In this document: in pieces, positions 28,708 to 61,696 of the stretch
How positions within the stretch are numbered: position 1 is the first letter of the stretch
How the letters are laid out: every line of letters starts with the position of its first letter
Assembly: GCF_006345805.1 (NCBI RefSeq)
Contig: NW_021833065.1
Location: 496,001 to 560,000 of the forward strand
DNA: 64,000 nt
Reading direction: 5' to 3'
From: Octopus sinensis
Lineage: Eukaryota
The notes under the pieces: generated by a model
Database searches by the model: none
Told to the model about the DNA's origin: nothing
What the model saw: the letters and a program-made list of their open reading frames with translations, nothing else
Program-made: the position numbers and the translations under genes

Positions 28708-29925
28708 ACATACATACATACACGATGACCGTCCACTCGTGACTGAGGAAGACCATTGCCAACCTTCAGGAACATTGTGCGCTCTAGGACTAATTTATAT
28801 TTTGCATTTGCGGCTCCGTTGGTGGCTAATGAGCCCTGCTCTTGACAAGCATACACGACTGCAAACATTGCAGACTAAGCTTTCCCTATTCACTACACAA
28901 GCAGTGCATTTTTGCGCAGCTCGTTTAGGTTCTTCATGCTGGATACGTGCTCTCTCAAAAGTGTCGATCCCCTCCTTAACCTGCTTCCTCCATCTGTGGC
29001 GATGACAGGCATTGTTCTCCCTGTCAGTGTTCTGCACATCACAGGCCTTTAATAAGGACTTGACACAGTCCTTAAATCGCAGCCTTGGTTTCTGCCGGAG
29101 TCTCCTTCCATTCACAAGTTCTCCATAGAGCATCTGCTTAGGAATCCTGCTAGGATCTTTTCCTTTTGAACGGCAGACAATTTCTAGTTAACTAAACACT
29201 TTAAAACTTCGTATACTAGTAGATTGTGTCAAAATAAAACATTTTTTTCTCTTGGCTTTCTTGAGAAAATTGTAATTTGTTTGTTTAACGTAGTTTAATT
29301 TTTCGAATTTCAACCAATAATACGCCCTCTTTTGAGCTAAAATCATTTGCTGCATCTAAAACTGAGACAACATCCTGTCACTAACCCTCAACCTAACCCT
29401 AACCCTAATTTTTTTTCTTAATTGTTAAATTAATCTAATTGTTATGCGGGTAAAAAAAAACCAAAGCAATGGAAAATAATTTAAACAATTAACAAACAAA
29501 ATAATTCTATAATTTTATACACACTCTTCCCGTACGTATACGGAAAGCGTGTGTGTATATATTGTTACACACGTAACAATTAAATTAATTTAACAATTAA
29601 GAACAAAAAAAATTAGGGTTAGGGTTAGGTTGAGGGTTAGTGACAGGATGTTGTCTCGGTTTTAGACGCAGCAAATGATTTTAGTTCAATGGAGGTAATC
29701 GATTGGTTAAAATTGCCGAAATGCTCGGATTTTCAGACGAAATATCTTTCAAACTATAGAATTTTCTCAATAAAACCAAGAGAAAATGATGTTTTATAAA
29801 CACATTCTACCAGTATACGAAGTTTAAAACTTTTTAGTTTCCTAGATATTATGTTACAAACTGCCGTTCAAAAGGAAAAGATCCTCCTGCTATCCTTCAT
29901 TCTCATAAGGTGTCCAGTCCACATA
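28708..29925 (-). mobile_element. RTE-BovB-like LINE 3' end, interrupted by a MITE
   Basis: Removing the MITE and one TSD gives WTGHLMRMKDSRIPKQMLYGELVNGRR..KPRLRFKD..C2H2 finger CNVCSRVCLSRAGLISHQR; (TATG)n tail. Confidence 0.9.
29153..29884. mobile_element. Merlin-like fold-back MITE with telomere-like repeats
   Basis: TIR GGATCTTTTCCTTTTGAACGGCAG; perfect 8-bp TSD TCCTGCTA (29145-29152, 29885-29892); (TAACCC)/(TTAGGG) in both arms. Confidence 0.9.
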
Positions 29926-29958
29926 TGTATGTACGTACGTACGTACATACGTACACAC

Positions 29959-29991
<33 letters not shown>

Positions 29992-30010
29992 TACACACAT
30001 ACATACATAG
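29925..30010. repeat. Compound (TACG)/(CA)/(CATA) microsatellite
   Basis: Direct inspection. Confidence 0.9.
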
Positions 30011-30099
30011 TGTTACAATCTAAACAAGCTGTAATGCACTTTGTTTTCTTGACCGCATAGCCCTGTCCCACAATGTGTGTGTGCATGCGTGCGCGTGTA

Positions 30100-31270
30100 T
30101 CGATACTATTCTTACGGTAATAGTCATATCTAGTAAACAGTGATCTGCTCAAGATATCGCAGGGCTTCCAACATTGCCGTAGCTTTAGTTACAATCAAGA
30201 TAAGCGATTGCAGTTCTTATGTGGGATAAAGCAACTCTATTTATTTCACCATCTCACCAGACTTTTAAGGTACACAACTTCTAAAGTTGTCTCCCTTCTA
30301 AGCTTTTGTATCTCATTGGTTACAAGTGCGAAAAATTGCGCTAGAATTGAGTTTATTTACTTAGGATATTCAAATAGTTTCTTTAAAAACTTGAGTCACA
30401 AATCATTAGGCATGCAACACGGTAAGATGAACGGTTATAAAATTTGTTTATTTCGTTAGTCATTTGAATTACTGAATATAATGGCATGGTAAATATTTAA
30501 ATACGACGGAAAATGTCTTGTATTTCCCGTCGAAAATTAATTAACCATCTATGTTTTGTCTCATATGCTTATCTCAGATCAAAATTTCAGCTGTTTCACT
30601 TTCGAATCACAACACAAATATTTAGGATAAAGTAACAGTTATTTTTTCCTGTTACGACTTATTTACCTTTACCTACAAACTTTCGACAAATTCTTTCTCT
30701 GTTCTTGTTGCTTCATCATTCAACATTGTACGAACTGTGTTTTCTTTTATGTGAACGCAAATGTTTATCTTCGCACGCCAGCGAGTAGTATTTCTATATA
30801 TCATTTTGCGATGATTTATATCGATGTTCATTTGCTTTTTACACAAAAGAAGAGAGAGAGAATGTGTAAAATTTTCACAAAATAATATTACTACTCTGCT
30901 TAAGCAAAACAAGTTACGAACTCATATAAATTACTCGCAAGTACCCTATTTAAAAGAAGGAATCAATAACAGTTGTGTACGAACATCAGATTCATCAAGG
31001 ATTATGCTAATCCCTGTTTGGGACCATAAGCAAACTTCAGAGTTCAGAAAACTGCACTACGCATCATCAAGCGTTGCAAACAGAACAGCAAAAGAAATTT
31101 ATTAAAAATAACGATCATTTTGACATGCAAGGGTCACAGTTTGTTGCCTTAAAAAACATATTCTCGCAGTTGTTGTCACTATATAGAAAAATCACTCTTA
31201 AACGCCCGGACACCTATACAACGGCTCAGAGAACTACTACAGCAGCATCCTAAAAACACTATCGTTTCTA
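30100..31270. promoter_or_regulatory. CpG-retaining, non-repeat region; probable ZSWIM7 (possibly bidirectional) promoter
   Basis: Many CpGs in otherwise AT-rich unique sequence, flanked by CpG-poor DNA; contains + strand donor at 30422 and - strand donor-like GTAAGA near 30115. Confidence 0.5.
30412..30421 (+). CDS. ZSWIM7: Candidate ZSWIM7 first coding exon (ATG CAA CAC G)
   Basis: Phase-1 exon with G|GTAAGA donor inside a CpG-retaining region; an alternative ATG exon at 32708-32726 also fits the phase. Confidence 0.45.
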
Positions 31271-34200
31271 TTCAGCTTAGACAAACGTAAAAATAAAATA
31301 ATAAAAAAAACCCACCAAAAACCATACACTTAGAAGTAGTTGCATCATTAATTGCCTCATTAGCTCCAAATGTTGTGCTGGGATGCACATCACCTGTAAA
31401 ATATGTAGAGGGACAGCAAATGTTTCATTCAGATCAAGTTCATCTTGTCCACTTTCACTGTGGCTGTCACCTGAATTTATGGGAGTATAGATATAGATTG
31501 AACGGTGTAGAAAGTGTAAAATGTTGAGAATGTCACACTGTTGCACTGTATGCAATTCCTCACAGTGTGTCAGGTGTGGTGGAGACCTAGTATAAACTGG
31601 AATAACAGATCTGTTTCACATCTTGTTCAGTCAACTCCTGACATAATCAGAGCTTATCTGGGTCTACACAAAAATAATTACACACTTCATAATATCATCA
31701 TCATCATCATCGTTTAACGTCCATTTTCCATGCTGGCATGAGTTGGACGGTTCGACAGCAGTCTGGGAAGCCAGGAAGCTGCACCAGGCCCCAATCTGAT
31801 CTGGCATTGTTTTCTACAGCTGGATGCCCTTCCTAACGCCAGCCACTCCGAGTGTATAGTGGATCTTTTTATGTACCACTGGCACAGGGGCTAGAGGAGC
31901 TGGCATCGACCACGATTGGATGGTGCTTTTTACATGCCACCGGCACAGAAGCCAGTCAAAGCAGCACTATTTGATATATTTAAAGTCATCATAACATCTC
32001 ATTACCTATGACAAAAAAAAGGTGACATTTCAAAATCACAAATTCTGTATTTTGGATTTATGTCTTGCAAATTTCATTGTGACAGAGAGAAGTGGCATCT
32101 TTAATTATTACATTCTTGAGATCAAATTTTGTATTTATACATGTTGTATTGTAGAGGTTGTGTTGGGCAAAGAGATATGTTTGCCAAGCCAACAACATTA
32201 TTCATGTATCTTTGAAATATGAGTTGTTCTAGGTCACATGTGTAGTGTGAATGGAGTATATTACAGAAATAAAATAATGAAAATTAGCATACATTGGCAG
32301 TAACCTGGTGGAATCAAGACAGCAAACTGTTGTCTTGTTCAACTAAGACATGTCTGAGGCTAACCAATACAAGAGTTGAAAGAATCTTTCTGTTGATTCT
32401 TTGCTCTGGTTAATTTCTGTAGAAGAAAGTTTGGAGTTTCATTATGTAGCCAATACATGGCTGAGAGATACAACTCTTTCAATGGTTTATTAATTTGGTG
32501 AAAAGCAGTGACTAACTAAAACTTTATGTGGTTGCATGAGTGTTTTACAAGGTTTTGATTGTTAATAGAGCATAGTATTGTTAACAGGAGACACACTATC
32601 AGCCCTTGATGGTTGTCTAGTACCCTAAAGACTCAGTCATTTTTGCTTCTACAAGATGTTTGATAGAGACATACTCATGAAATAAGATAAAAGAAAGTTT
32701 AACAAACATGACAACCTTTGAATTCTGTAAGTCATCAATCAGAGGCCATTTATGCAAATTAGTTTAAGAAGCACTAGTCTTACAAATATACAAGAAAGCT
32801 TCTTGAACTATAATTTAGCTACCTTAGGAATTTTAATGCTTTTCTTCTGTGTAAAAAATCATTATTAACAATAATAATCTAAATATATATTGATTTTTAG
32901 CAGTTATTTGCAAAATATCTAAGCGTTATTGAACTGTCAATTTGATATATATATATATATTTTACGTTGTTTTGTCTTGTTTATCGGAAATCATTAAAAG
33001 CATAACAATATAATAATTTTTTTCTCCCCAGATGTGTTACTTTCTACTGTAGAGACCCAATTAATGTCAGAAGTCTCTCGAGTCTACAAGGAAACCAATT
33101 CATGTAAGATATTTTCAGCTCTCAGTTTTAACTATTTCATGCAGTACATTGGAAATGACAACAGAAATGTTTCATAGTCTTCAGTTTAGTTTTGAGACGT
33201 AAGAGATAGCATATAGATTCAATAATTATATTGTTTATGAATAAAGTATATAGAGCAACATGATCTTGGGTAGGCGTTATTAAAATGTTATCTCCCTTTA
33301 ACCAACTGATAGTCGATATAAGTCCCAAACCAGTCATGGGTAATCGACGGTCCGTGGGACCTTCAGAATGGTAAGCCCAATGAAAAATTTACCTTTAACT
33401 TTCTTAGTTATGCAGTCTGCCAGATCATGAGCCTTGTCTCATGCAGCCTGCTTCTTGGAAAGTTACCAATGCCTGGTCTAAACTTTAATTTATATGTATA
33501 TGCTAAACCTTCAATGCTGGAAAGAGCACTTCTTGAGTCTTCTGAACCAAAACTCCAATGTGGTACCCATGCATCCAACTCAACACTGGTTGAACACGCC
33601 ACCATTCTACGAAGAGTACCAGATTGCCCTCAACTGCATGAAGCAGTGAGAGTCTCCTGGCCTAGACAACCTCCCAGGGGAACTTCTAAAACATGGTTGA
33701 CTACTATTAAACACTTGTCTGTTCTCATTGTTTCTCCGAATGTGGAAGAACTGCCATGTTCCCAAAGATCTCAAAGATGTTGTTATTATTATTACCATCT
33801 TCGAAAAAGGAGATAGAAAGATCTGTGGGAACTATTGTGGCATCTCACTGCTCTCCACTACAGGGAAAATCTTTGCAAGACTCCTGGATCATCTCAAAAT
33901 CATTGCGGAGGAAGTCCTACCTGAATTACAATATGGATTTCGACCATCCAGAGGGACAACTGACATGATCTTTTGTGCTTGACAAATACAAGAAAAGAAT
34001 AGAGAACAACAAAAACCTCTCTATTTTGTTTTCTACGACCTCGAGAAGGCCTTTGATACCGTCCCAAGGCTGGCAATGTGGAAGGTCCTCTGATGCTTTG
34101 GCTATCCTGATCAGTTCGTTACATATATTGATTTAACTATGAGCGGGTGCTGAAAAGTTCCTGGTTTTGGGTTAAAGAAAATAAGGGAGGATCAGTTAAT

Positions 34201-37200
34201 TATGATTTTATCCAACATATTCCCCTCTCAGATTCAAACACTTATTGCAGCAATTCTTCAGTTTTTCTAAGCCCTGTAAAAGAACTCAGAAGGTTGGGCC
34301 TCCAACCAGGCCTTTTGTGATACCTTTAAAGCCAGGAAGTTTTTAGTTCCTTGTTTATAAGTTTGACTTTATAAGCATCATAAGATATTTGTTTATGATT
34401 ACAGCAGTAATTTACAAAGAGTTAGCCATTTGACAATATTGTGTAATCTCTTCAAATTCAGAGTGATAAGCAACACTCTAAAGTTGTCTCATCTTGAAAA
34501 AAGCTAGTTCAGAATTTCTTCATCCTTATTATATATATATTAAGTATCACTATCTAACCCTTTATAACAGGATTTACTGGGGGCACTAAATTCAAACCTT
34601 TTCTATAATTGTATTGTGAGCTGTAGATTTAACCAATTTGATTGGAAATGGATTCAATGAGTTGTTCCCAATTAAGATATTCAACTATAAAAGTGATTGC
34701 TGTAACGATATGTCAGTGTAAGAATTTTTCAGTGAGGCCATTATTGAAAGATGGATTTAAAGTATGAAAAAGATTTGTTATATATTGTAACCACTGTGCA
34801 TGTTGGTGGCAAATTGTACATTTTTTCTGTGCACATGTATGTGTGTTTGTGTCTGTGTGTGCACACGTATGTGTGTGTATGCACATGTATGTGTTTGTGT
34901 TTTACTGTCTCCTTCCCATGACATCTTGCAACAGTTGTAAATGAGTGTCATCATCATGTGTGCAATGTCCTTCATTTCCTGTTTTCTGTAAAAAAATATC
35001 TGATCTTGGAAACAGGTGATGGATGGCGATATGTAGGGCATCTGCTTGTAGAAAATCTGCCCCAACATACTGCGTCTGACCTATGCAAGCATGGAAAAGT
35101 GGATGTTAAAATGATGATATTTCGTTTTTGGATTTGGTTTGCAAGATTCTTTATGTGAGTTCGTGTGTTGAAGCATATTCTGTTGTGCCTGGGGAGAGTC
35201 ATTTTCTTTTTGTGCCTTATAATTTAACACACTCACTTAGGAAAATAAAAATAAGAAATAAGTGGAAATTTTACCGGTGAGTGTGTTAAATTATAAGGCA
35301 CAAAAAGAAAATGACTCTCCCCAGACATAAGAGAAAATGATGATAATACATGATGATATAAAAATTATAATGCTATAACTTTGTGTTTATGTAAAACAGT
35401 AGCTACATTATTTATATCTGTTTTATAACAATATAAATGGCTTTTATGATTTCAGTGTCTGATGAATTGTTATCCGCGTGAGTATATATATCCACTTTCT
35501 ATATATATATATATTAGTTTCAAATTTTGGCACAAGGCCAGCAATTTCGGGGAGGGGAATAAGTTAATTACATCGACCATAGTACTCATCTGGTACTTAT
35601 TTTATTGACCACGAAAGGATGAAAAGCAAAGTCAACCTTGGCAGGATTTGAACTCAGAATGTAAAGATGGATGAAATATCACTAAGCATTTTGCTTGGCA
35701 TGTGAACAAGCTTGCCACCTTACTTTATATATTAAGAATTGGTCTATTTTATCTGCATTTTCCCAGAAACATTTTCTGAAATTATGAAGCATAAGTCATA
35801 TTTACCAACATATTTACATTTATACACCTACTAGCAGTATCACCTGACGTTGCTCGGGTTTGTTTCGACCCTTTAGAATTGGAATTTTTGAAAAGTAAAA
35901 ATTTTGCATTATGTAGCTTGTTATCTCTCTATATATAAACGGCAGTTTGTCTGTGTGTGTTTCTGTGTGTCTGTTTGCTTGTACCCTCACCCTGACCACG
36001 GCTTTCAACCGATTCTGATGAAACTTGACACACACATAGCCCAATGTCATAATTCAAAACTAACGCAGCGAAAATTTTGAAAAGTTCCCCCAGTTCTGAA
36101 AAAAATCGATAAATTCGACATGGGGTCGAGAATCAGAAACACAAACCACAGACTGTCTAGGGGACGCAACTCCACCTTTTTAACTAAAAAAAAATTTACC
36201 ATAATTTTTTTTCCATTTTTTTGCTATTGTTTGGCTATAACTCTCTAAAAATGCTTTATAGTTATTTCCCTTACAAACCTGAGCAACGCCGGGCGATACT
36301 GCTAGTTCTCTTTAAATGAACATTTTTCTGGTTGAAATACACCGAAAAATGGTGACACAGCAGTCAAAAAATCATAAAAATAGGGATTTTCATAGAAAAA
36401 AAGCACCTTTTTGATGTAAATAATTTTTGGTGTTAACATAATCCGATTTGAATTTTTTCTTCTACGGAAGGAAGAGCAAACCTTCTTCTATCATACTCTC
36501 AATTTTGGTCAACTTGCGCCGCAGAGTCTTGGAGGAGATACTGTTAGTTGAAGGCTACCAAACCTGCCATACACTGACAACTTCAGCTTTATATATATAG
36601 AGATTTACATTTACACAGCTATATACTTAAGGAACTAATCTTAGAAATTTATTAAATATTTCCAGTTGATACTGGTTTTAATCTTTGTAGTTTCACCAGT
36701 CAATAAATATGTTATACACATCACACAAGTGTGATATTTAGAGTCTATTGCCAAATTTTTTGTGGGAACTGAGTTATTAGTTTTATCTATCTTAGAGATA
36801 TAGATTAATAGGATTTATGATGTTTGTAACTCTTGCAAAAGTTATTGTGCTGTTAATGAAGAGACATAGTCTCACCTATATTAGAATTTGATTATAGGAT
36901 TCAGCTCATCATTTAACGCTTGCTTTCCATGCTGGCATGGGTTGGACAGTTTGACAGGAGCTGGCTAGGCAGAAGACTGCACCATGCTTTGCTGTCTGTT
37001 TTGGCATGGTTTTTTTTTATAGCTGGATGCCCTTCCTAACACCAACCACTCCACAGATACCTCAACTTTAATTTACTCAAGATTAACTTGTTTATTGTAT
37101 CTGAAACTGATAACAGGCTCAACCTGAAATTCAGATTATATCTTATAGCATACTAATTTGCCACACTGTCTCAAGATACTATGTAACTTTGATGACTTAT

Positions 37201-40200
37201 AATGACTGACAAGAGATTATGTTGTATTTTTGTTTTATTCTTTTATTCTAGGCTTCAGTTCATTTACCAGACAAGTCTCATGCCTGCACTTGATATCATT
37301 GATAGAAAAGCCGTTACTCTGCTAGAATGCCCAAGTAAACGCCAATTATACACAGTACGTCTTCTATACAAAAAGTTTCGTATTTGTTTATAAGTAATAT
37401 TGCATGTGGAAATTGCTTTACAGCTGAGTTTATATGGTGCTGGACTCACAATGAAGGGTGGCAGTTCATACTCTGGCACTGAGAAAGGACTATGTCCATA
37501 ACCATGAATTGAACACTTAAATGGCTCAATCCACCTAGGTGTAAATGGATAGCACAAATGTTACAGCTCAACACTGTGCAGCAGCATTAATATGAAGTAG
37601 TAGGAACCATGGAAATCCCACATTTTATAAATTTCCTTATTTCTATTTTTACAACAGTCTTTCATTATGTTTAAGATTTCACTTACATTTTCAATTTTGT
37701 TCCATAGTTAAGGTAAAATTATAACACTTGAAGATATATCATAACATTGTGGAATAATATGCATACATATGAGATATATATATCTATATATATATGATAT
37801 GTCTGGCTGGGCATTAAATGATGATGATGTTGACAATTCATGATATATATCATGTTTATAATGATGAGGATGATGACGATCATCATTTGATATCCTTCAA
37901 ATGTCCAATTTTTCGCATGGATTAAAACGAAATTTGTCAAGGCAAATTTTCTATGGCTAGATGCCCTTCCTGTTGTCAAATCTCATCCAAGCAAGGTTAT
38001 ATTTTCCATGGCTGCACATCGTTTTTTTTTATAGAAGACTGGAAAAGAAAACATCCTTGAACAAGTGGTGCTTGTTTATCATTTGATGTCAAGAAAAGGA
38101 TACACACATACACAAATATACATTATACTGCTTTCAGTTATTATCTACCAAATCCACTCACAATGCTTTGGTCAGCCTGGAGCTATATCAGAAGACACCC
38201 TAGGAGCCATGTAGCAGGGCTAAACTTGAAATCACATGGCTGAGAAGCAATCCTCTTAACCACACACACACAAATTTAGTGTATGCATATGAAACAGCAT
38301 TAAATTAAAATACTCATCTATGTATTATACTTGCTGTATATACACTGTTGACACGCACAATGCTATAGTATTTGTCTGACTGAAAGTCTCTTCATAGAAA
38401 TGCTGTGTTATAAAACATAATATATATTGGAGTGAGGCAATTATCATGACTCATGAGAATGCCAGATGTGTGTTGGCCTACCTGGGTCTAGTCAATGACA
38501 TGTACTCACTAATCTCATACCTCAGTGAAATCAATTCTCTCTGATACATGGGAAACAGGGAATAATATATTCACTGATATTGCAGAAAGTCTACTAAGAT
38601 GAAGTTCAGTGTTTTGTAATTCTGAAATTCTGATGTAACTTTACCTTTTCAAACCTCTCTGGTCTAAAGCCGTACTTCTTCCTTATCAATCCATAATATT
38701 TGTTCTCTCGGCTTCTAACATCCATTTACAATGTTCTTACTCGAGCAGTTATCTCCCCTGCTTACAATATCTTACTGTCTTTCATATTCTATCACTTTCT
38801 CAATTCACTGTATTTAATTTTTGTGAAAACATCTCTTACATAATGAACTATACATAGCTCATTTCTCTCATGAATTGCTGTCTTCAATGTTATACAATAT
38901 CATAGTTCTTAAATGTATTTTTTATAATGTCTTACAGAGAGACAATTCCTTTGCTTCTCACAATTTGTCCATCATATGTTGTTTACAGTGTTACATTTAT
39001 CATGTTTATTGTGCAGGTAATGGGCACTTCAGGAATTGTGTATATTTGTTTCCCTGACAGCAAATATTGTTCCTGTCCTGCTTATAACTATTCAGGTAAA
39101 GTATCATACAAGTGCTCATTTACTTTTTTACTGATTTCATGTTAACTGGAAGCGGATGGATTTTGTTAATATGGACATATTAATAGTTGTGCTAACTACC
39201 AAACTGAAGCCTGAGTGTAACCACTTGTCACTCAGAATGAGTTATAATCTTGCTAGGCAATGCAGCATAATACTCATAGTAAGATTCTTAACCTTACTCT
39301 CATTGTATCTCTTGGTGTTGAAGGCAAGTATTTTAGTATGTTTGTAAAGAACTGACAGATTCCAACAGTGTTAGGAGTCTAAAGAAATCTGAAGAGTAAA
39401 ATGCATGCTTCTGTGCCGGTGGCACATAAAAAGCACCATCCGAATGTGGCTGATGCCAGCGCCACCTTGGCTGGCTTCCGTGCCGGTGGCACGTTAAAAG
39501 CACCAACCAATCGTGGCTGATGCGAGATTCCCCTGGCACCTGTGCCGGTGGCACGTAAAAAGCACCCACTACACTCGCGGAGTGGTTGGCATTAGGAAGG
39601 GCATCCAGCTGTAGAAACACTGCCAGATCAGACTGGAGCCTGGTGCAGCCCCTGGCTTCCCAGACCCTGGTCGAACCGTCCAACCCGTGCTAGCGCACAA
39701 AACAGACGTTAAACGATGATGATGATGAAGTGAAGTTATTATTTTCTATGGGATTTTTTCATTTTGTTTTCTCACAAAAATTAGAAGTCAAATTAAATTT
39801 AATATACGAACTAGACTTGTGCATGTACTGTCTTAAGAAGAAAAAAATAAATAGAATTTCAATTGCTGATTCCCACTGATTTTAAATTGAATAATTTTGA
39901 ATGCAAGAAAACTTTTATCTATCTTTTTCACTTTATTTCATCCACTTTTTTTAAAATTTGGTTTTTGCTTCATTAATATATCACATTTTCACTTAGAAAT
40001 GAGTATTTTACACAAACACAAGGTCTCAAATATGAAGTTCAAAGAAAATGTGAAGTGTGATGTCTCTCTTAGAGAAATGAAATGAAATTCCTTCAATTGG
40101 AATTAAAACTGATATAGAGATTTAGCCTGTAAGGAACTTATATTGTATCAGAGTGCTTATCCATGTGATATTAAACAGTAAATCATTTCACAGAATTAAA

Positions 40201-40874
40201 TTATTGTTAAAGAGGAGATTGCTCTTGAGCATGATTTAAAAAGTAGTTGTGTTAGTTGTTTTACATAATTGGAAAGGATAGGAAATTTTAAAACATATTA
40301 ACCAAAGGCTGTCACAAAACAGTAATTATCACTGTAATGATGAAATTATGAGCACATTTGATTACTGCAGAAAGTTAAAATGTTATTCTGTTTATCTTTC
40401 ATCTTTTAAATACTTTGTCTGCTAATCATATACATTCAACTTCATATATGAGGTCAGCTTCCAGAGATACCCAGGTATCCTTTCAAATTACTGTGAATTA
40501 ATGCTATAATAAATCTGCAAGGCCTGATTTGCAACAGTGTTTGCTATGAAATCCCTTTGTATGACATCATCATCACAAACTGAATAATTTTGTGGAGTTG
40601 TTTCTGGTTCTTGTGTAAATGAGCTGAAAAAGTAACAGCACATTAAAGATGTATATATATATATATATTGGTGGACGCACGCAGTTGTCGAGTGGTACCC
40701 GCGTGATCGGAAAAGACCACCCGGAAGACCTCCACGATGGTGGAATGACGATTTCAGGAGGACGATTGGGATCACGTAGATGAGAAAGGCGTGATCCAGA
40801 GAGGAGTGGACAGCGTGCTGTGACCAGCGGTGTCAAATGGACGCCTGACGGACTGGTCGGTCAAAGTGATCAAA

Positions 40875-40915
<41 letters not shown>

Positions 40916-42665: not shown

Positions 42666-43919
42666 ATGACGTGCACCAGAATCAAATCTGAAAACAATGA
42701 ATGCCTTGGTAGGGTGACAATGAAGATGTTGAAACCAGCAAAATGAGAATATTAACAATTCAGAAGATAAAATACTTTACAGTGTATTCTTTACTCTAAT
42801 TGTTTAACATAGATGTCAACCAAATATTCTTAGAAGGGCAATATCTCATTAGTTAGGTATAAACTCCTAAAAGACACACAGCATTTGAGGACTCTTAAAT
42901 GACTTAGAACTCTGAGTATTTAGCAATCTGTGAAATTATCCTTTTCTATGTCTATTGGAGGTAGTCTGGGATTTTCATGTGTGTATAGCAACAGAAACAT
43001 TTCAAATATGAAAGCAGTACACTAATGTGGATTGTTTTTGTGCTGTGTAGTAAGGTCAAAGTTGAAATAATAATTTCAAATTTAATTGGTATGCAGTTTT
43101 GGTTGTATATGACATTGCCAGTCAGAGACTGTGAAGCTTAAAGTTTGTGGTAATTTTTAAGGACAAATTATTTGCTACACTTGTAAATAAAATAAATATT
43201 TTTTTATTCATTCTCACATTTTGTTTTGATAGTTTGTTATTGCATTCTGTATTGTTGAAGAAAACTTAGTTTTTATCTGTAAGACAATTTTTAACAGAAA
43301 TATATTTGTGTATTGAATTATGCTGAAGGATTTGAACTTTAATGCATTGCAGACTGAACTCTCAGTGTCCAGTATATAAATTTCAAATTTAGATGAAGCT
43401 TGCCACCTAAACTGTAAGGCTTCTTTTTGATGAAGTAAAAATACCCCAATGAACTGAAGGGATAAATGAGAAATTGTATTGTTTGTGTATATCCTAAGAG
43501 CATTTGGAACAAAAGTTAGTGAATTGCCTTTAACCAGGGTAGAGTTGGCCTGTAGTATGCTTATCTCTTGGATGAGTACTTTATTATCTTTTAATGTTGA
43601 ATTCAAAGCATACAATGAGCATAACTTAGAGGTGAATGAACTTAACCAGTTCATGTCCCAGGCATACTAATCTAGAACTGATCTTGTTAACAAAAAATTA
43701 CTGCTTATTGTGGTGGAGTTATAAAATGGACCCAATACACCCTACAAAACCGTAAAAACTATGCCAAAAATTGTAATGTACAAGTGAAATGTCATTGATT
43801 GCCTCATCTGGAGGGGCAGTAACAATGAATAAGGACTGATTTGGATCTTAATGATACATCCAACCCATGTTGGTATGGAAAATGGGCAGGTTTGAAGAGA
43901 AATAGTTACTGTATTGATG

Positions 43920-44368
43920 ACCTTGTTTCCATAAGCTATGTGGTTGAAGAGTGATTTAGGGTGACCTGCTGTGCTTGAGGAGACCTATTGAGTCAAGTAC
44001 ATCAACATCAAAATAAATATCAAATGGAAATTGTAGTTGTGATACCTGTGCCGGTGGCATGTAAAAAGCACCGTTCGAACTTGGCCAATGCCAGCGCCGC
44101 CTTGACTGTCTTCTGTGCCAGTGGCACGTAAAAAGCGCCAACCGATCGTGGCCACTGCCAGCCTCCCCTGGCACCTGTGCTGGTGGCATATAAAAAGAAC
44201 CCACTACACTCATGGAGTGGTTGGCGTTAGGAAGGGCATCCAGCTGTAGAAACACTGCCAGATCAGACTGAAGCCTGGTGCAGCCACCTGGCTTCCCAGA
44301 TCCCTGTCAAACCGTCCAACCCGTGCTAGCATGGAAAACGGACGTTAAACGATGATGATGATGATGAT
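43920..44368 (+). mobile_element. SINE family B, longest copy (5' extension plus three modules)
   Basis: gggtgacctgctgtgcttgaggagacctattgagtcaag leader, modules at about 44047, 44115 and 44175, (GAT)n tail. Confidence 0.9.
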
Positions 44369-45084
44369 ATAGCCTAGAATAGTCTGTCTGTTTTCTATTT
44401 TAAGATTCTTTTTCAAAATACTCTACAGAACCTGTTCATCAATTCTGATTGTCAAAACATGTATAGCAACTTAGCTTTGTATGTTGTATCATCAGTCTGA
44501 CTCTACTGCTTCCACAATGGTGGGGTTTGGCTGGGTTGGGAGCAGGGGTAAGGTCATTAGGACCTGGTGGTCCATTCAGACCTTCATCTGACTGCTTGTT
44601 TTAGTGTATTACTTCTGCACTCATCATCTGACCATAGCATGCTGCAAAAGTGATGACAAGTCAAGGGTTAACATCTATATATAAACATCTTTTGCTGTGA
44701 TCTTTATATTCTTCTTTCCCACTTCAGAATCAGCCTATTGACAGGCTTGTGTTGCTTAGGCTCTGTTTGTATCTTTGCCTTGTTATTGGTATTGGTATTA
44801 TAAACCAAGTATACACTTGCTTATGACCTACCCCATTCAAGGAAGCACATCTCTTGCTTCACCTCTGCCAGGTTTCTCAAAATCTTCTTTTGAGGACATG
44901 GAAACTCTCCCTGTTACTTGCAATACAGGAGTATGTCATCTTTTTGGATAAAATCCCTTGTTTTTCTCAATAAATAACATCTTCTTTCCTTTTTCTTTAG
45001 CCTTATTTCCTTAAAGTATAATGATACAAATAAACTAAGAAACGTAATTACTATCTCAAGCAACACTACACGTGTGAACATATG

Positions 45085-45900
45085 TATGTATGCATGGTAG
45101 TATAGTTTACTTTGCAACCATGTAGTTCTGAGTTCAACCCTTATTGTAGGGTATGTTTGACAAATATTGGATCTTTACCGTTTGAACTACAGATTTAAAA
45201 AATAATTTTTTGTAACTAAACACTTTCAAACTTCGGACACTGGTAGAATGTGTCATATAAAACATCTTTTAGCATTTTTGAGAAAAACTTATATTTACAA
45301 AGTTATTTCACATTAAAGTTGTCCTATTTCGGTAATTTCAACCAATCAATGACGTGTATTCAGCTGAATAAAATTACTGCTGTTGTTTGTCAACAAGAAC
45401 TTCCGGCAGTGTATATTTCGTTTGTCACTGTTATTTATGACAACCTTAACCCCAACCCTAATCCTAAAACCCTAACCCTAACCTTAAAACTCTAACCCTA
45501 ACACTCTAACCCGAAAACCCTAACCCTAAAACCTTAAAGCTAAAACCAGTACAAACGCACGACTGATGTCATAAATAACAGTGACAAACAAAAAATTCAC
45601 CGCTGATAGTTGTTGACAAATAACGGCAAGTAATTTTATTCAGCTGACTACACATCATTGATTGGTTGAAATTACCGAAATACGAGAACTTTAACATGAA
45701 ATAACTTCGTAAATATGTTTTTCTCAAAAATGCTAAGAGTAAAAGATGTTTTATGTGACACATTCTACCAGTGTCCGAAGTTTAAAGTGTTTAGTTACAA
45801 AAAATTATTTTTTAAATCTGTAGGTCAAAAGGTAAAGATCCCAAATATTTTCTTAGACTGAGTTGGGCTGGTAAGTGGAATCTGCCAGACAAGCTGTAAC
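45085..45900 (+). mobile_element. Decayed SINE family D split by a MITE
   Basis: Head (caaccatgtagttctgagttcaa..tttgacaaat) left of 45169; resumes as tttcttagact..taagtggaatct right of 45841. Confidence 0.55.
45169..45841. mobile_element. Merlin-like fold-back MITE with central telomere-like array
   Basis: TIR GGATCTTTACC..; about 270-bp arms; perfect 8-bp TSD CAAATATT (45161-45168, 45842-45849); (TAACCC)-like array at about 45442-45540. Confidence 0.92.
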
Positions 45901-46539
45901 CCCACTTCCCGAAAAAACTCCCAAAAAAACACACTATATTGTGTTTGTGTGTGTGTATATGTTTGTCCTTGTTTACAACAATGTTAAAATCGATGCTATG
46001 TTGTATTTCTTTATGCCTTACACTTTAGTAGTTCAATGGGACTACCTGAGGCATGTTATTTGGTTAGGGGCTATATGATTGACTACACACTTGAAGGTGC
46101 TGCACTGTATGTCTGCAGCCCAATGACTAAAACCAGTAAAACAATAATAATATAAAATGGAAAAAAAACTAACACAAATTACTACAATAATGTAAATGAG
46201 AAAATAAGAGAGTGAGAGAGAGAGGCAATGAAAAAGGTGGAGGGAAAATAAATATCTTTATGTCTTCATACTCTTTACTCATTTGTTTTTTTTTTTGTTT
46301 CCTTTTGCTTAACTTAATTGGAAGACTGCAATCATCTTTGTGTGTGTGAGTTTGTATGTGTTTGAACTATACATAAAAGTACATTTGGTTTATAAAAAGT
46401 AAAAGAGTCCAATAGATAAAAACACAGAAAGTATGTTGCTGTTTATTAGTTGGCACTACCTAGGCGTTACTCAGAGTCCTAGAGTTTCGTTTCCTAATAC
46501 TTTTCAAATGAAACACAAGCACTTATATATATAAAATGT

Positions 46540-47031
46540 ATGTATGTATGTGTGTATGTATGTATGTAGTATGTATGTATGTATGTATGTATGTATGTAT
46601 GTATGTATGTATGTGTATACATATATACACAAGGATAAATGTATATATGTGTGTGTGTATGTATGCATATATGTGTATAAATATATATATATACATGGAC
46701 ATGTGTGCATATATATATATATATATGTCAGTATATATATATGTGTGTATGTATAAATGTGTGAATATTCCTATACATACCTAAGTATATATATATGCAA
46801 ATATATAGGTGTGTGTGAATTTATGTCTATATGTGTGCATGGATTGTCTATTTACATATAAATATTCATGTATATACATGTGTGTATGTGTATGCGGTTG
46901 TATGTATGTGTATATGTGTGTGTGTGAGTATGTATATATATATATATAGATGAATTGAAATTTGACGTTCATACAAACATAATAAATATATACTTATATA
47001 CATATACTTACACACACACACACACACAGAG

Positions 47032-47064
<33 letters not shown>

Positions 47065-47095
47065 TATGTACACATATATATACACACACACACAG
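46540..47095. repeat. Compound (TATG)n/(TA)n/(TG)n/(CA)n microsatellite field
   Basis: Direct inspection; source of many spurious ORFs. Confidence 0.95.
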
Positions 47096-47819
47096 ATGAA
47101 CGTCGAATTTCAATTCAAGTATCTATATACTACGCTGATAAGATCAATTTTCTATGAAATAAGCCGCTTATTTCTTCAAAGTGTACCCCCGACCTTTTCG
47201 TAGAGATTCCTTTACAATTGTTGTTGTTTTTTTCTTCTCTTCATTCATTAAGAATTTTTCTCGTGCGTCACTCAGAAAACACCACCTATCTGAATTACAT
47301 ATGGTAAATGTAGTTGTGTTGTATATATTTTCCCATAATGGTTTCTTCCAGTTCAATAGAACTTTAAAGTAACGAGGTAAAATATACGTGAATAACAAAA
47401 GTGCAGTTCCTCGGCTGTCGCTAAACTTCACAAGTACATTTAGCCAAATTTATAGTGATTTTTCGTTTTTAAAAGTGCAAACCACTCTCGGTTTGGGCTG
47501 TTCCCATTTTCGCATCCATTCACCTAATTAATCAGTTGGACTCGTCCCGATTTATAAATAAGAAGTATTAGGCGAGTCTATTTTATCGTTTTTCTAGTAT
47601 AGTATCTTTAGTATCTTATCAAATATTTGTTTTTATTATGTTGAAGCTTTCCGATTTTGACAGATGTGATTGTTGTTGTTCCCGTCGTTGTCGTCATCGT
47701 TGTGTATATGTGGGGGAGTTGTTGATTTCGTTACTGAGATAAATGTTGTAACAACTTGTATTATTTGCTGCTGCTGTTATACTTATAGCTACCGTTATCG
47801 AGTATCTGTACGCAGCGTC

Positions 47820-47995
47820 GGAAAAGTGCCTTGCGGTGTTTGTTCAGGCTCTGAGTTCAAATCTTGCCGAAGTCAACTTTGCCTTTCATCCTTTCAGGGT
47901 CGATAAAATAAAATAAAATATCACTGCTATTTCTTTATTAGCCACAAGGGCTCAAAATAGAGGAGGGGGGGGGGACAAACAAGGACCGACAGGAC
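47820..47995. mobile_element. Two SINE family A pieces in opposite orientation
   Basis: + strand core 47820-47912 abuts - strand tail 47928-47995. Confidence 0.7.
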
Positions 47996-48168
47996 ACCAC
48001 AGAGGGGACAATACCTAAAACGAATATGAATGAGATGATTATATAACAATGAGGTTATGAATGGCTGCATGCGCCCCTCATCACATGCAGTACCATTAAC
48101 CTTTTTTTACAGTCCATTTTTATCAACAGTTAATTATAGTGTTACATACCTTGCAAGAATTTGAACCG

Positions 48169-48391
48169 TTACTCTTTTACTCTTTTACTTGTTTCAGTCA
48201 TTTGACTGCAGCCATGCTGGAGCACCGCCTTTAATCGAGCAACTCGATCCCGGGACTTATTCTTTTTGTAAGCCCAGTACTTATATTATCGGTCTCTTTT
48301 GCCGAACCGCTAAGTAACGGGGACATAAGCACACCAGCATCGGTTGTCAAGCAATGCTAGGGGGACAAACGCAGACACACAAACACACACA

Positions 48392-48445
<54 letters not shown>

Positions 48446-48616
48446 ATATATACATATATACGACGGGCTTCTTTTCAGTTTCCGTCTACCAAATCCACTC
48501 ACAAGGCATTGGTCGGCCCGAGGCTATAGTAGATGACACTTGCCCAAGGTGCCACGCAGTGGGACTGAACCCGGAACGATGTGGTTGGTAAACAAGCTAC
48601 TTACCACACAGCCACG
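48169..48616 (-). mobile_element. SINE family D with expanded internal (TA)n
   Basis: Reverse complement of 14427-14801; (TAAAAGAG)n tail. Confidence 0.93.
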
Positions 48617-48993
48617 TTATATACATTATATACATCATATACATTATATACATTATCTACAAATGTTCTTCTATTTTTCAATATTTAAAAAAAAACTAAA
48701 CATAAAACACCTGACTCTTTTTTTATTCTTTTTTTTCTCCTTTTTCTCCCCCCCCCATCCTTTTCAGTGCATTAACTGGTATGTATGTGATAGACTGAGC
48801 CCCTCTCGCCCCAACATAGCTGACCTTGTGCCCAAATCAAAAACCAGCATTTCTTCATAAACGCCATCGCCGTTTTCATTATAGTTGTGTTGTTGCTTTA
48901 CTTTCAATATTATCAAAAATGCTGTTATGTTATTAACAATTAACCCTACCTCTTTATTCGAACTGCGTGCCTGTTATTATTATTTATTAGTTA

Positions 48994-49387
48994 CTAGCAG
49001 TATCGCTCGGCGTTGCTCGGGTTTGTAAGGGAAATAACTATATAAGCATTTTTAGAGAGTTATAGCCAAAATATAGCAAAAAAATGCATTGAAAATGGAA
49101 AAAAAATGATGGTAATTTTTTTTTAATCGTTGACTCATCGTAGACATTTTTAGAGAGTTACTTCCCTTATATAATAGGGAAAAAATGCATTAAAATGGAA
49201 AAAAATGATGGTAATTTTTTTTAAATCGTAGACTCATCGTAGACGCGCGCTAATACCCAGACGGGCTCGATATGAATCACGACTATAAGATATCCGGTTT
49301 TGGTTAAACTGCACCGCAAAATGTGGGAGTAGTTGGGAATCTAAATCGTAGGAGACAGACACACAACCTTACTTTTATATATAAAGA
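48994..49387 (-). mobile_element. Non-autonomous Helitron, family 1
   Basis: A|TC...CTAG|T on the minus strand with 3' hairpin; near-identical to 6488-6885. Confidence 0.9.
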
Positions 49388-51045
49388 TTATTATTATTAT
49401 TATTATTATTCAGTAGTTTTATTTTTATAGCGTGCTTTCACTTCACTACCGAGCGCAGCTCTGTGTGCCTTGGGTATGTGCTGTGATTTGTTGTGATGCT
49501 CTGATGGTTATTGTATGGAAAGTGTTCTGCGTAGGATGTGTGCAGTGCCTAGTAGTGCAATTTTCTGTATGTTATATGTGTTTGTAAGTCCTGGTGTTTT
49601 TGTTATGTATTTGTCTGAATATTTTTTTATCATGCCTAATGCACCTACTATGATAGGAATTGTTTCTGTTTTTAGGTTCCACATTCTAGTTACCTCTATT
49701 TCCAGGTCTTTGTATTTTGAGAGTTTCTCCATTTCTTTTAGAGACACGTTGTCATCTGCCGGTATTGATACATCAATTAGAAAGCATTTTTTTTCTTCAT
49801 GATCTCTGACAACTATATCTGGTCTGTTGGCCTTAATTTCTCTATCTGTGTGTATCGGCATATCCCAGAGTATGGTTGCTTTCTCGTTTTCTGTGACCTT
49901 TTCTGGTGTGTGCCTATACCATCTTTTTTCTGTTGTTATTCCATAATGTTGGCATAGCTTCCAATGTATGTAGGTTCCAACTCTGTCATGTCTGTGAATA
50001 TATTCCTTCTTAGCCAGGACTGGGCAGCTAGAGATAATATGATTTATTGTTTCTTGTCCATCTCCACATATTCTGCAGTTACTTGTAATATTTCTTTTCA
50101 TTACATGTTTTTGGTAATTTCTGGTGGGGAGGCTTTGGTCTTGTGCTGCAATTAAAAATCCCCCTGTTTCTGCTTTGAGTCCTGAGCTTCTCAACCATTG
50201 TTGGGATTTTTCTTTGTCTATTTCTTTTGCGTTTAGTTTAGTGCAGTATTACCATGAAGGGGCTTTTCTTGCCATCGTTTTATCATGGCTCGTTGCTGTT
50301 CTATTTTTAGTTTGGATTTCATTTGTTTTATAGCTTTTGTTGTTTCTTCATCATCTTCTTCTTCTTCTTTGTGTTTATTAGGTGGTATGATTTCTTGTTT
50401 GTATTTGTCAGCTTCCTTAAATACTGAGAACAGTTTTTTGTTTTGCTCGTGTTTTGCTGCTATCTGGATCAGTTTTCCTTCCTTCTGAAGTAGGTATTTT
50501 TGCAGTCCTATGGTGGTTATTTTATAGTAGTTTTCCAGCTGTATAAGGCCTCTACCACCTTCTATACGTTGTATATATAGTCTTTCTATGTCAGATTTTG
50601 GGTGATGCATCCTAGATCCTGTCAGTATTTTTCTTGTTTTCCTATCTATTTTGGACAGTTCATTTCGTGTCCAGTTAAGGATATTGTAGCTGTAACTTAT
50701 AACTGGGACAGCTAAAGTGCTGATACCTATTATCTTGTTTTTAGCATTGAGCTCTGTTTTTAGTATTGATCTAACTCGTCTATACTATTCTTTTTTTATT
50801 TTCTCTTTCATTTGTGTGTGTTGTGTCTTATCTAGTTCATGGATTCCTAAGTATTTGTAAGTTTGGCTTTGGTCTAATTCTTTTATTTCATTGGTTTTAT
50901 CTAGTGTGATGTTGTTACTCTTAACTAGTTTTCCTCTTTTCATGGTTACTTTGGCGCATTTTTCTAATCCAAATTTCATATCTATTTCTTTGGTAAATCC
51001 ATGAACTGTCTTTAATAGTGTTTCCAGCTGTTTGTCATTTGCAGC

Positions 51046-51046
<1 letters not shown>
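49388..51046 (-). mobile_element. 5'-truncated R4/Dong-like non-LTR retrotransposon (RT C-half, CCHC, restriction-like endonuclease)
   Basis: KFGLEKC..YKYLG; HHPKSDIERLYIQRIEGGRGL; CRICGDGQETINHIISSC; RPDIV..LIDVSIPAD..EKLSKY; only one stop (about 50785) and one frameshift (about 50245); (TAA)n tail. Confidence 0.95.
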
Positions 51047-51129
<83 letters not shown>

Positions 51130-51175
51130 ATATTATTTATTATTATTTATTAGTTATTTATTTGTTAGTTATTAT
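51047..51175. repeat. (TTA)n microsatellite
   Basis: About 80 bp perfect, then degenerate. Confidence 0.95.
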
Positions 51176-51185
51176 TTAACCCCTA

Positions 51186-51810
51186 AAAGGCAGCGAGCAG
51201 GCAGAATCGTTAGCGCGTCGGACAAATGCTTAGCGACATTTGGATCTTTTCGGTTTGAACGGCAGTTTTTTTCCAGCGGTATCATATGAAATTGTCACCC
51301 ATAATTATGACCTAATATCGATCTATTGCATTTCAATCTGTTTTAGGGTTAGGGTTAGGGGTGGGGGGAAGGGTATCTGTTTTTCTTCACAAATGTAAAT
51401 AAACCCAATCTGTTTCTTAAACGAGGGACATATTCATACAACACAAAATGTTTTTTTTTACCTCAATAGACGATACTGATTGGTTGAAATTGCAGAAATT
51501 GAAGAAAAAAAACAACAACGAATATCTTACAAACTATAGAATTTTCTCAATAAAGCCAAGAGAAAAAGATGTTTTATAAACACATTCTACCAGTATACGA
51601 AGTTTAAAATTTTTTAGTTACCTAGAAATTATGTTAAAAACTGCCGTTCAAACCGAAAAGATCCGGCATTTCTTCTGATTCTTTACTTTCTGAGTTCAAA
51701 TACCTCCGAGGTCCATTCAGGGTCGATGAAATAAAGTACCAGTTAAGAAATGAGCGGATGTAACCGACTAGGTCCCGCTTTCTAACTTTCAAGCCTTGTG
51801 CAGAAATGAT
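51186..51810 (+). mobile_element. SINE family A split by a MITE
   Basis: Head to gcttagcgacattt at 51241; resumes ggcatttcttc at 51665. Confidence 0.85.
51242..51664. mobile_element. Merlin-like MITE with (TTAGGG) tract
   Basis: Perfect 29-bp TIR GGATCTTTTCGGTTTGAACGGCAGTTTTT; duplicated target g(a/g)cattt; right arm near-identical to the right arm of 29153-29884. Confidence 0.9.
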
Positions 51811-55449: not shown

Positions 55450-56408
55450 CGTAGTTGAGTTGCTGCAGTTTGGACAAAAAAATAAAGTCTACAATGCCTG
55501 GAGAATCTTACCTGATTTCCAAAACTGGGTGGCGTCCACCCAGCAACGCAATTATTTTAACATCATTATCCGAGATGCAAAAAAAAAAAAAAAAAAACCG
55601 CCTTCACGCATCACACTGCCCTTAAGCTTTTCCATCTCTCAAATTGCTGCTGATCTTTTTGGTCCCTGTCAACTTTGTGAAAACCTGTTTTCCTCCAATT
55701 TTAAACAATGATGACTATTGTAAGGAGTACTCCCAATGAAGAAAGCCTCCACCTTAGCTACCCACTTTGCATCGAACTCCATACTACATACACTTGGCCA
55801 ATCCCCTCCAAATCTCCCCCCATACCACTTCAATAGGCTCTCCACTCCACTTACACATGCCAGTTGCAGAAATACCTTCAATTGTTCCAAACAAACAAAA
55901 CCACAGGCCCTGAAAATGACTTTTTTCTTACACTCCAACACTGCGCATCAGAACTTGCTCATATACTCACCAATTACTTTTATATCTCATTCTCCACAGG
56001 GATATTACCTGACATTTGGAAACATGTCTCAGTGTATCTCATTCCAATGAAAGTCAACCCCTCTGACTCAGACAATTATCGTCATATTGCTCTTATCTCT
56101 AACATCTCTATGGTAACGAAGACGGCCATAATCAATAAAGCTCTCCAAGATCTCGAATCTCTCACTTTCTACAGTGATCACCAGTACACTGGCGACCTAA
56201 TCTCTCATGTCACTCACCAGTGGGTTTTCACCTTAGAGAAGTCCGGTAAAAGCAATATTGTTGCCCTCCACGTTAGCATAGTCTTCAACCATGTCTGGCA
56301 TGCGGGTCTCCTATCAAAACTTCCAGTGTACTGGCTCTGCCCATCTCTCAAATTTACACACACACACACACACACAACACACACACACACACAACACACA
56401 CACACACA

Positions 56409-56440
<32 letters not shown>

Positions 56441-58289: not shown

Positions 58290-58430
58290 CTAATATTTCA
58301 AAATTTTGGCACAAGGCAAGCAATGTCGGTGGAGGGACCAAGGTGGTTATATCGACCCTGAAAGGATGAAAGGTAAAGCTAACCTCGGCGGAATTTGAAC
58401 TCAGAACGTAAAGACGGACGAAATGCCTCT
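58290..58430 (-). mobile_element. SINE family A, head truncated
   Basis: Core plus caaaattttggcacaagg tail. Confidence 0.85.
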
Positions 58431-61400: not shown

Positions 61401-61696
61401 CTCCATACACGGGACTCTATCGCACAGAGACAAACTATATACCATAGACATTAATGGTAAAAAGGAAACTGTCTCAATAGACAGGCTTAAGCGGTTATAC
61501 ACAGACAGTGATACAATATCACCTCATACACCTCCCAAATTCACAGTACAACATAAAACAAACGCTACTCCACTGCAACCACCATCAACACCATCACATA
61601 CACCGATCCCTCCTCCATCTACATACGTCACTTCGACTTGTAGTGGTCGCCGTGTACATCGGCCCATTAAGCTGCCGAAAACTATATACATCTGAA

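Follow-up and report, generated by a model that had tools for sequence, protein, structure and literature searches.

The question raised by this locus is how short runs of telomere-like repeat came to lie, several times over, within 64,000 nucleotides of the Octopus sinensis genome (assembly GCF_006345805.1, contig NW_021833065.1, positions 496,001 to 560,000 of the forward strand). We call this whole stretch the window and count positions from its first letter. A preliminary description, made from the letters alone, had proposed three related fold-back elements with common ends, here E1 (29153–29884), E2 (45169–45841) and E3 (51242–51664), as mobile carriers of telomere-like sequence. Our analysis bears out that the three belong to one family, which we refer to as family A; it is real, non-coding and, as judged by its target-site duplications (TSDs) and a reconstructed empty site, mobile. 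With a further copy in Octopus bimaculoides, family A is represented here by four copies. We first describe the tracts and the elements that hold them and then assess how the tracts spread, which transposase probably moved them, and where the tracts may have come from.

Telomere-like tracts and the elements that hold them

Among cephalopods, TTAGGG is the sole telomere motif established by experiment (PMC13218726; PMC6160780), and tracts of this motif thus count as telomere-like for an octopus host. We searched the window and 14 further loci (~300 kb) for (TTAGGG)2 in all its rotations, allowing up to one mismatch. The window contains 15 matches against 0.15 expected, which rules out chance microsatellites as the source of the tracts. 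Twelve of the 15 lie in E1–E3, while the other three lie in a fourth element, at 17283–17336, which belongs to a second family (family B, described below). These four elements make up 3.6% of the window sequence yet contain all four of its tract sites. Across the ~300 kb, every cluster of at least nine overlapping matches (spanning 20–94 bp) falls in family A or B, and the short C-strand half of the centre of the O. bimaculoides copy also falls within family A; three clusters of 4–7 matches (16–18 bp) lie outside both families. The preliminary description had proposed counting the share of interstitial TTAGGG that resides in such elements, and in this sample that share includes all of the larger clusters.

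The tracts are 20–110 bp long and differ in position, being in the arms of E1 and at the centre of E2. The 12-mer telomere scan places the right-arm tract of E1, TTAGGGTTAGGGTTAGGTTGAGGGTTAG, at 29613–29640 on the plus strand, and the left-arm tract, CTAACCCTCAACCTAACCCTAACCCTAA (29381–29408, minus strand), is its exact reverse complement, variant unit TCAACC included. In E2, a degenerate (CCCTAA)n tract (45442–45547, minus strand) is found both by the scan and as the loop of the fold-back, while E3 contains (TTAGGG)3 followed by a G-run (51343–51373, plus strand), with a canonical G-quadruplex (G4) motif inside. The earlier statement that all of the elements carry such tracts, whether in both arms, centrally or once, therefore holds, in four of four copies including that of O. 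bimaculoides.

The boundaries of these elements are well defined. E1 is delimited by its ends, terminal inverted repeat (TIR) pattern, arm alignment and folding, and runs from GGATCTTTTCC to GGAAAAGATCC. It starts with GGATCTTTTCCTTTTGAACGGCAG and ends with the perfect reverse complement of this start, so that its inverted termini are perfect over 24 nt within the element, or 25 nt counting one flanking base per side. The TSD is TCCTGCTA, with identical copies at 29145–29152 and 29885–29892. E2, a member of a divergent subfamily delimited by ends, arm alignment and folding, starts with GGATCTTTACCGTTTGAAC and is flanked by CAAATATT at 45161–45168 and 45842–45849, as read from the sequence. E3, identified from its ends, arm alignment and host junction, has a 29-nt perfect TIR and lies between GACATTT (51235–51241) and GGCATTT (51665–51671), a duplication of 7 bp, or of 8 bp with a shared terminal C, that has one mismatch (7/8). 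As first described, there are thus two perfect 8-bp TSDs, those of E1 and E2.

All six ends in the window start with GGATCTTT, and the perfect terminal repeats across E1–E3 measure 24–29 bp. The TIR pattern matches seven times in the window against 0.95 expected, and six of the seven matches are the six ends. The common arm core reported earlier is confirmed as well, since the pattern AAACTTCG.A.ACT.GTAGA..GTGT has five matches in the window against 0.01 expected. At 423–732 bp, the elements are within the size range of MITEs (miniature inverted-repeat transposable elements; <~800 bp), and the longest open reading frame (ORF) within E1–E3 is 55 aa, which leaves them with no coding capacity.

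Insertion can be followed most directly at E3, whose host is a copy of an abundant short interspersed nuclear element (SINE). Once E3 and a single copy of the duplication are taken out, its two flanks, put together, can be aligned to ~20 paralogous SINE copies with no gap at the junction. The uninterrupted SINE reads ...GCTTAGCGGTATTTCGTCTG..., including GGTATTT, while the flanks of E3 read ...GCTTAGCGACATTT and GGCATTTCTTCTG...; this comparison gives a duplication of 7 bp (8 with the shared terminal C) and one later substitution. The insertion of E3 is thus proven by an empty site, as built from the paralogous SINE copies, and this gives independent confirmation of its boundaries.

A six-way alignment of the arms resolves one family with two subfamilies, E1/E3 and E2. 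The right arms of E1 and E3 share 93.75% identity, whereas E2 is ~75% identical to E1/E3. Within E2, the arms (45169–45442 and 45567–45841) are 88.6% alike over 281 bp. Folded as single-stranded DNA, E2 forms one stem of ~275 bp with the telomere-like tract as an unpaired loop (−232 kcal/mol, z = −38), while in E1 (−218 kcal/mol, z = −52) both tracts pair with each other. E3 retains only the right arm and the 29-bp left TIR, its left arm having been replaced by unrelated sequence. The fold-back description therefore applies to E1 and E2, which are near-complete fold-backs, but not to E3. Likewise, the proposed cruciform potential is supported by the fold calculations, but the G4 potential holds only in part: canonical G4 motifs are present in E3, the family B element and the O. 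bimaculoides copy, and absent from E1 and E2. Two of the four G4 motif clusters of the window are inside these elements.

Several further features of the arms were observed. The inner palindrome of E1, which includes the tracts (29326–29419 and 29602–29695), is 94% complementary, while its outer arms (29179–29250 and 29779–29850) are only 76% complementary; the E3 arm matches the left and right outer arms of E1 at 81% and 94%, respectively. This pattern could mean that E1 is a recombinant or that its inner part was made palindromic again. The best-conserved internal motif of the arms is AATTTCAACCAATCA, ~165–190 bp from each end, found at 29306–29320, 29700–29714, 45334–45348, 45659–45673 and 51477–51491 in the window and at 5730–5744 and 6107–6121 in the O. 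bimaculoides contig. It contains a CCAAT box, which we take to fit the NF-Y consensus, and could be a candidate subterminal transposase-binding site or promoter element.

Inheritance of the tracts

An 8-kb contig of O. bimaculoides (L011) contains a full family A element at 5575–6284, GGATCTTTGGGGTTTGACGGGCAAC ... GTTGCCCGTCAAACCCCAAAGATCC, of which both ends begin with GGATCTTT and which is flanked by a perfect 8-bp TSD, TAACGTTG. Its arms are 82% identical to those of E2. The centre consists of TTAGGG-like repeats, a short spacer and then CCCTAA-like repeats. When this centre is compared with the reverse-complemented centre of E2, the two have in common the arm end TATTTATGACATC, the unique spacer TCGTGCGTTTGTACTGGTTTTAGC and a tract of ~100 bp with a matching order of variant units (TTTAGGG, TTTTAGGG, TGAGGG/TTAGGG, TTCGGG, TTAGAG and so on). 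The same decayed array is thus found at different loci with different TSDs, which implies that it was present in a common ancestor and was transposed along with the element. On this comparison, the tract of E2 and the O. bimaculoides copy is inherited cargo, and not an addition made after insertion. This same O. bimaculoides element also contains, at 5792–5810, an additional GGATCTTTTCCCTTGAA; the fragment resembles a TIR of the E1/E3 subfamily and looks like a nested or aborted insertion.

Family B provides a second case. Its element in the window is a fold-back with GG ends at 17102–17574, recognised by its ends, flanks and folding (GGAAAGACTTCC...GGAAGTCTTGCC). The ends GGAAAGACTTCC and GGCAAGACTTCC match at 11 of 12 positions, the flanks GCCGTGAT and GCCGTGGT match at seven of eight, and the folding stands out from shuffled controls (z = −5.7). 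Apart from the GG, these ends are unrelated to those of family A. The telomere scan locates a central (CCCTAA)-type tract at 17283–17336 (minus strand), with a G4 motif on the minus strand. A homologue at another O. sinensis locus (L012, 7082–7666; 69% identity over 591 bp) has a central tract of its own, of ~95 bp, between the same flanking sequences. Both of the two family B copies seen therefore have the tract. Altogether, families A and B are two unrelated families that have GG ends, 8-bp duplications and a telomere-like centre.

One could suppose instead that the tracts were not carried at all but were inserted, or arose as microsatellites, independently after each element had landed, with the palindrome centres prone to breakage. 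The differing positions of the tracts among E1, E2 and E3 would fit such a history, as would their presence in two unrelated families, which points to a recurrent process, and telomerase is reported to fill breaks in other animals (PMC2246262). The unique spacer and variant order over ~100 bp that are common to E2 and the O. bimaculoides copy, despite different loci and TSDs, speak against it, as do the same flanks around both family B tracts and the identity of the E1 tracts down to the variant unit; these indicate copying and not independent synthesis. Since the E1 tracts are exact reverse complements, including TCAACC, they were duplicated with the arm and not synthesised twice. For family B, and for E2 compared with the O. 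bimaculoides copy, independent acquisition is already largely refuted, and we regard it as very unlikely in general. The proposal that these elements are a mobile carrier of telomere-like sequence accordingly holds in this sample, with a tract in four of four family A copies and the tract of E2 and O. bimaculoides common by descent.

The head-to-head TTAGGG/CCCTAA arrangement of the O. bimaculoides copy is what a telomere fusion would leave behind, and one might therefore read the tracts as relics of ancient chromosome fusions or of subtelomeric DNA. Every tract, however, belongs to an element with TIRs and a target-site duplication at its borders, a context that refutes this reading; moreover, 35 kb of the window hold four such sites, further ones are known from other chromosomes and species, and the tracts are only 20–110 bp long. 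We consider a fusion origin extremely improbable.

The tracts might also be functional, for the element or for its host, and kept by selection, for example because they recruit telomere-repeat-binding proteins, form G-quadruplexes or break up the palindrome for replication. Their retention in all four family A copies and both family B copies is in line with this, as are the canonical G4 motifs of E3, family B and O. bimaculoides; in general, long palindromes should gain stability from a spacer at their centre. The tracts are degenerate, however, with a divergence between E2 and O. bimaculoides that looks about equal to that of the arms, and neither E1 nor E2 has a canonical G4 motif. A selected function thus appears quite unlikely.

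Transposase assignment and neighbouring repeats

The preliminary description had likened the ends and duplications to those of Merlin. Merlin elements are defined by terminal 5'-GG, an 8–9-bp TSD, a TIR of 24–462 bp and a DDE_Tnp_IS1595 transposase, and O. bimaculoides has 191 Merlin proteins, the top count given for any protostome species (PMC8101967). Family A shows the GG at the six window ends and at both ends of the O. bimaculoides copy. The TSDs TCCTGCTA, CAAATATT and TAACGTTG are perfect 8-bp duplications (that of E3 is 7–8 bp with one mismatch), and the inverted repeats have perfect cores of 24–29 bp with arms of up to ~275 bp.

We queried with one of these O. bimaculoides proteins and fetched the loci of three Octopus matches. 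The protein P0207 (PF12762, 76 bits) is encoded in an 8.7-kb Merlin present at three O. sinensis/O. vulgaris loci with 98–99.6% identity (L008 4265–12996, L010 4252–12997 and L009 ~3886–12950, delimited by ends and TSDs). This element has arms of ~350 bp, ends GGCGATG... and GGCATAG..., and perfect 8-bp TSDs at all three loci (GCAAATCT, GAAACTTT and CAAGGCTT). It serves as a positive control, from which it follows that octopus Merlins do show the signature of GG plus 8 bp. As a partner of the MITEs it was rejected, because it is a different family and the GGATCTTT inside it is internal and coincidental. The P0207 Merlin also has a further internal inverted repeat of 344 bp, and its protein is identical at all three loci; this unusually large Merlin looks recently active and may carry cargo.

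A closer candidate lies on the same O. bimaculoides contig as the fourth family A copy. There, a Merlin ORF (P0134, 3223–4056, 277 aa; PF12762 at 62.7 bits) encodes an N-terminal Cys-rich motif and VEIDES, IISDLW and HIESLW blocks. A MITE-like terminus at 4516–4602, ...AAAAGATCC (ending in AAAGATCC at 4602), lies 545 bp downstream. Its reverse complement reads GGATCTTT followed by GTAGTGTTTTTGGTACCGAAAsACTTTCAAACTTCG, which agrees with the MITE arm of the same contig at 38 of 40 positions, as counted on the alignment. The 25-nt core of this motif occurs at only two sites in the contig, the terminus and the MITE arm (0.00 expected). Beyond ~115 bp the homology fades, which is what one would expect of a MITE compared with its autonomous element. 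The pairing of MITE and Merlin at this contig is therefore probable as far as the sequence tells. In looking for the autonomous partner that the preliminary description called for, we thus obtained one homologous terminus beside a PF12762 gene, while the second end was not found. The assignment to Merlin is nonetheless supported by the combination of GG ends and 8-bp TSDs (PMC8101967), the P0207 control and the terminus 545 bp from a transposase ORF.

The family A elements could also be MITEs of another superfamily with 8-bp duplications, with the Merlin gene beside the terminus being a coincidence. The length of the TSD alone does not discriminate; duplications of 8 bp are also made by hAT, P/Galileo-like fold-back, Zisupton and Novosib elements. 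Moreover, the Merlin-bearing element matches at one end only, over ~115 bp, and long, internally repetitive arms recall Foldback and Galileo elements. The details of the ends point the other way. hAT elements have short TIRs that start with a YARNG-type motif and an 8-bp TSD that is often nTnnnnAn, whereas the family A ends are GG and not the CA/TA type usual for hAT, and TCCTGCTA and CAAATATT do not fit the TSD pattern. For hAT membership, then, the TSD length fits, while the GGATC ends and both perfect TSDs do not; no search for a hAT partner was made. Galileo duplicates 7 bp and FB 9 bp, and the arms of both are built of internal tandem repeats. Family A differs from them in its 8-bp duplication, GG ends, telomere-like repeats and arms of unique sequence, in which tandem structure is confined to the telomere-like tract, and membership in the Foldback/Galileo (P superfamily) group was rejected on the arms and the 8-bp TSD. 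In contrast, octopus Merlins with a transposase show exactly these GG ends with an 8-bp TSD, the O. bimaculoides terminus is oriented as expected and follows a Merlin ORF, 545 bp downstream of it, on a contig of 8 kb, and the window is without any other transposase ORF. Indeed, no DNA-transposase ORF of any kind was found in the window. We consider membership in another superfamily unlikely and retain Merlin as the probable source of the transposase.

Among the other loci fetched, two Merlin-bearing ENA contigs (L013 and L014) and two contigs with long terminal repeat (LTR) elements (L001 and L002) come from unrelated organisms and have no octopus repeats in common with the window. On one of these, a eukaryote contig (L014), 104-aa fragments of a Merlin transposase recur every 1473 bp at 5936–9196, which looks like a tandem array built from a Merlin piece. 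The arm core, searched as an exact pattern, had no match in the JGI metagenome and IMG/VR collections. At the extreme end of an O. vulgaris locus (L005, 20384–20410), GGATCCTAACCCTAACCCTTTCAAAGG has a short telomere-like run directly after GGATCC.

The window itself is rich in other repeats, many of which match O. vulgaris loci at 75–94% identity. Fragments of non-LTR retrotransposons lie at 28795–29133 (minus strand), 49508–50610 (minus strand) and 55864–56463 (plus strand) and comprise reverse-transcriptase tails and a C-terminal Cys-rich domain; the first of them is an ORF that has E1 inserted in its 3' part. The SINE copies at 10048–10398, 10966–11259, 39333–39683, 43956–44255 and 39411–39566 yield spurious ORFs with the motif LDALPNANHS, a type that appears in the O. 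vulgaris annotation as "hypothetical predicted protein"; the ORF at 39333–39683, derived from this highly repeated SINE, matches only Octopus proteins, which together with the O. vulgaris repeat matches marks the window as octopod DNA, and one SINE copy contains a 67-bp tandem duplication. An LTR-type retroelement at ~58400–62200 has long ORFs for protease-like, reverse transcriptase (RT)/RNase H and integrase regions, the RT/RNase H part corresponding to PF00078, PF17919 and PF17917 in relatives. Its DNA is ~67% identical to elements in the ENA eukaryote assembly ERZ21867824, and its closest named proteins, at ~50% identity, are from cestodes. The Rfam and tRNA scans of the window had no matches.

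Origin of the tracts and their meaning

Altogether, we think it fairly likely that these are Merlin-mobilised, non-coding MITEs that carry telomere-like cargo. A DDE transposase of the Merlin superfamily, supplied in trans, would recognise the GGATCTTT... TIRs, excise the element and paste it elsewhere, duplicating 8 bp of target, and each transposition would plant an interstitial telomere-like tract at a new site. Mobilisation in trans by Merlin is suggested by the signature of ends and TSDs, by the positive control and by the one-sided partner. As for the first tract, repeats made by telomerase may have served to fill a break inside an element. Breakage is known to occur at long inverted repeats, and the fragile tip of the long palindrome would be the most plausible place, or else the junction of the deletion that created the MITE. 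The tract would then have decayed and spread with the element. Such an origin would have occurred at least twice, in family A and in the unrelated family B, and this recurrence suggests a process rather than an accident. In mammals, telomerase is documented to insert repeats at double-strand breaks (PMC2246262, PMC7215372, PMC8537989).

Several points weigh against this account. The statement that all family A copies carry the tract is based on just four copies. Family A is absent from the ~123 kb of O. vulgaris (six loci) and the ~62 kb of O. sinensis (three loci) that were fetched, and among the ten fetched Octopus loci it was found only in the O. bimaculoides contig. In alignments, neither the tracts of E1 and E3 nor the sequences beside them could be shown to be homologous to their counterparts in the E2 subfamily. 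With respect to the transposase, an inverted-repeat search for the left end of the O. bimaculoides Merlin found none, and the sequence upstream contains gaps and microsatellites; the terminus could be a stray MITE fragment that lies beside a Merlin remnant by chance. In an O. sinensis Merlin (P0146) that is 82% identical to the O. bimaculoides Merlin, only the ORF region is common and the terminus is absent. As to the origin step, periodicities of 14–26 bp in the arrays show that they were also shaped by slippage or unequal exchange; what the copies document is the subsequent spread by transposition, and telomerase repair is a putative first step.

The elements can be placed among several known systems. 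Merlin elements and MITEs (Feschotte 2004; PMC8101967) are alike in 5'-GG, 8-bp TSD and a TIR or arm length of 24–462 bp; octopus genomes are rich in Merlin transposases, and one MITE-like terminus adjoins a DDE_Tnp_IS1595 gene, although a complete autonomous copy with both family A ends was not recovered. Internal telomere-like arrays are outside the published description of Merlin (PMC8101967). MITEs with internal tandem repeats are known from DTC84 of Donax trunculus, pearl and BIV160-type elements of bivalves, Xstir of Xenopus and (GTCY)n of insects (cited in PMC5615363 and PMC6947457). They are likewise short and non-coding, with inverted ends and an internal tandem array spread by transposition, but the array is a family-specific satellite or microsatellite, whereas the octopus array is the host telomere motif. 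The octopus array also differs, in a comparison made by description only, in its place within a long palindrome, either central or in each of the two arms, and in occurring in two unrelated families. Foldback-type elements, such as FB and Tetris of Drosophila (the latter cited in PMC5615363) and Galileo of the P superfamily, are alike in that their inverted arms are very long and leave little or no sequence at the centre, and have in common with the octopus elements the potential to form hairpins or cruciforms.

Short interstitial telomeric sequences (ITSs) inserted by telomerase (Nergadze et al., PMC2246262; PMC7215372; PMC8537989) are likewise short internal TTAGGG arrays. We take an insertion of this kind as the likely origin of each family's first tract. 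They are, however, single events at a break, without TIRs or TSDs, while the octopus tract has been multiplied by transposition. Transposon-borne ITSs have been proposed as a hypothesis, with no concrete family given in the text read (PMC9693754). A recent repeat annotation of O. vulgaris lists Merlin and MITE families and does not mention telomere repeats (PMC13282606). A literature search for MITEs that bear telomere repeats, or for a Merlin MITE with a telomere-like tract, found no description (Dfam and Repbase were not covered), and a full-text search for the TIR sequence returned unrelated primers only. Tandem-repeat-spreading MITEs, notably in molluscs, and fold-back transposons are thus known already, and the Merlin MITE with a built-in telomere-like tract is a variant that we did not find described.

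The usual interpretation of ITSs is that they are scars, left either by chromosome fusions or by the repair of single breaks. With a DNA transposon family as carrier and multiplier of the host telomere motif, there is a third and testable route, for which the literature has proposals but seldom a concrete, documented family. If families A and B hold most of the internal TTAGGG of octopus, ITS maps of cephalopods would be unfit as fusion markers, scaffolding of cephalopod assemblies guided by the telomere motif could be misled, and sequence able to form G4s and cruciforms would be scattered by these elements. The probable pairing of Merlin and MITE was gained in a genus with unusually abundant Merlin. 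A bolder possibility, which we hold to be unlikely, is that long-palindrome Merlin MITEs and telomerase are mechanistically linked in octopuses, with breaks at the hairpin tip, or at the deletion junction from which the MITE arose, healed by telomerase-made repeats repeatedly and independently in unrelated families, and that such elements are the main source and dispersers, genome-wide, of ITSs, G4 motifs and fragile palindromes. If this link were true, the elements could have provided material on which the extensive rearrangement of chromosomes in coleoid cephalopods acted.

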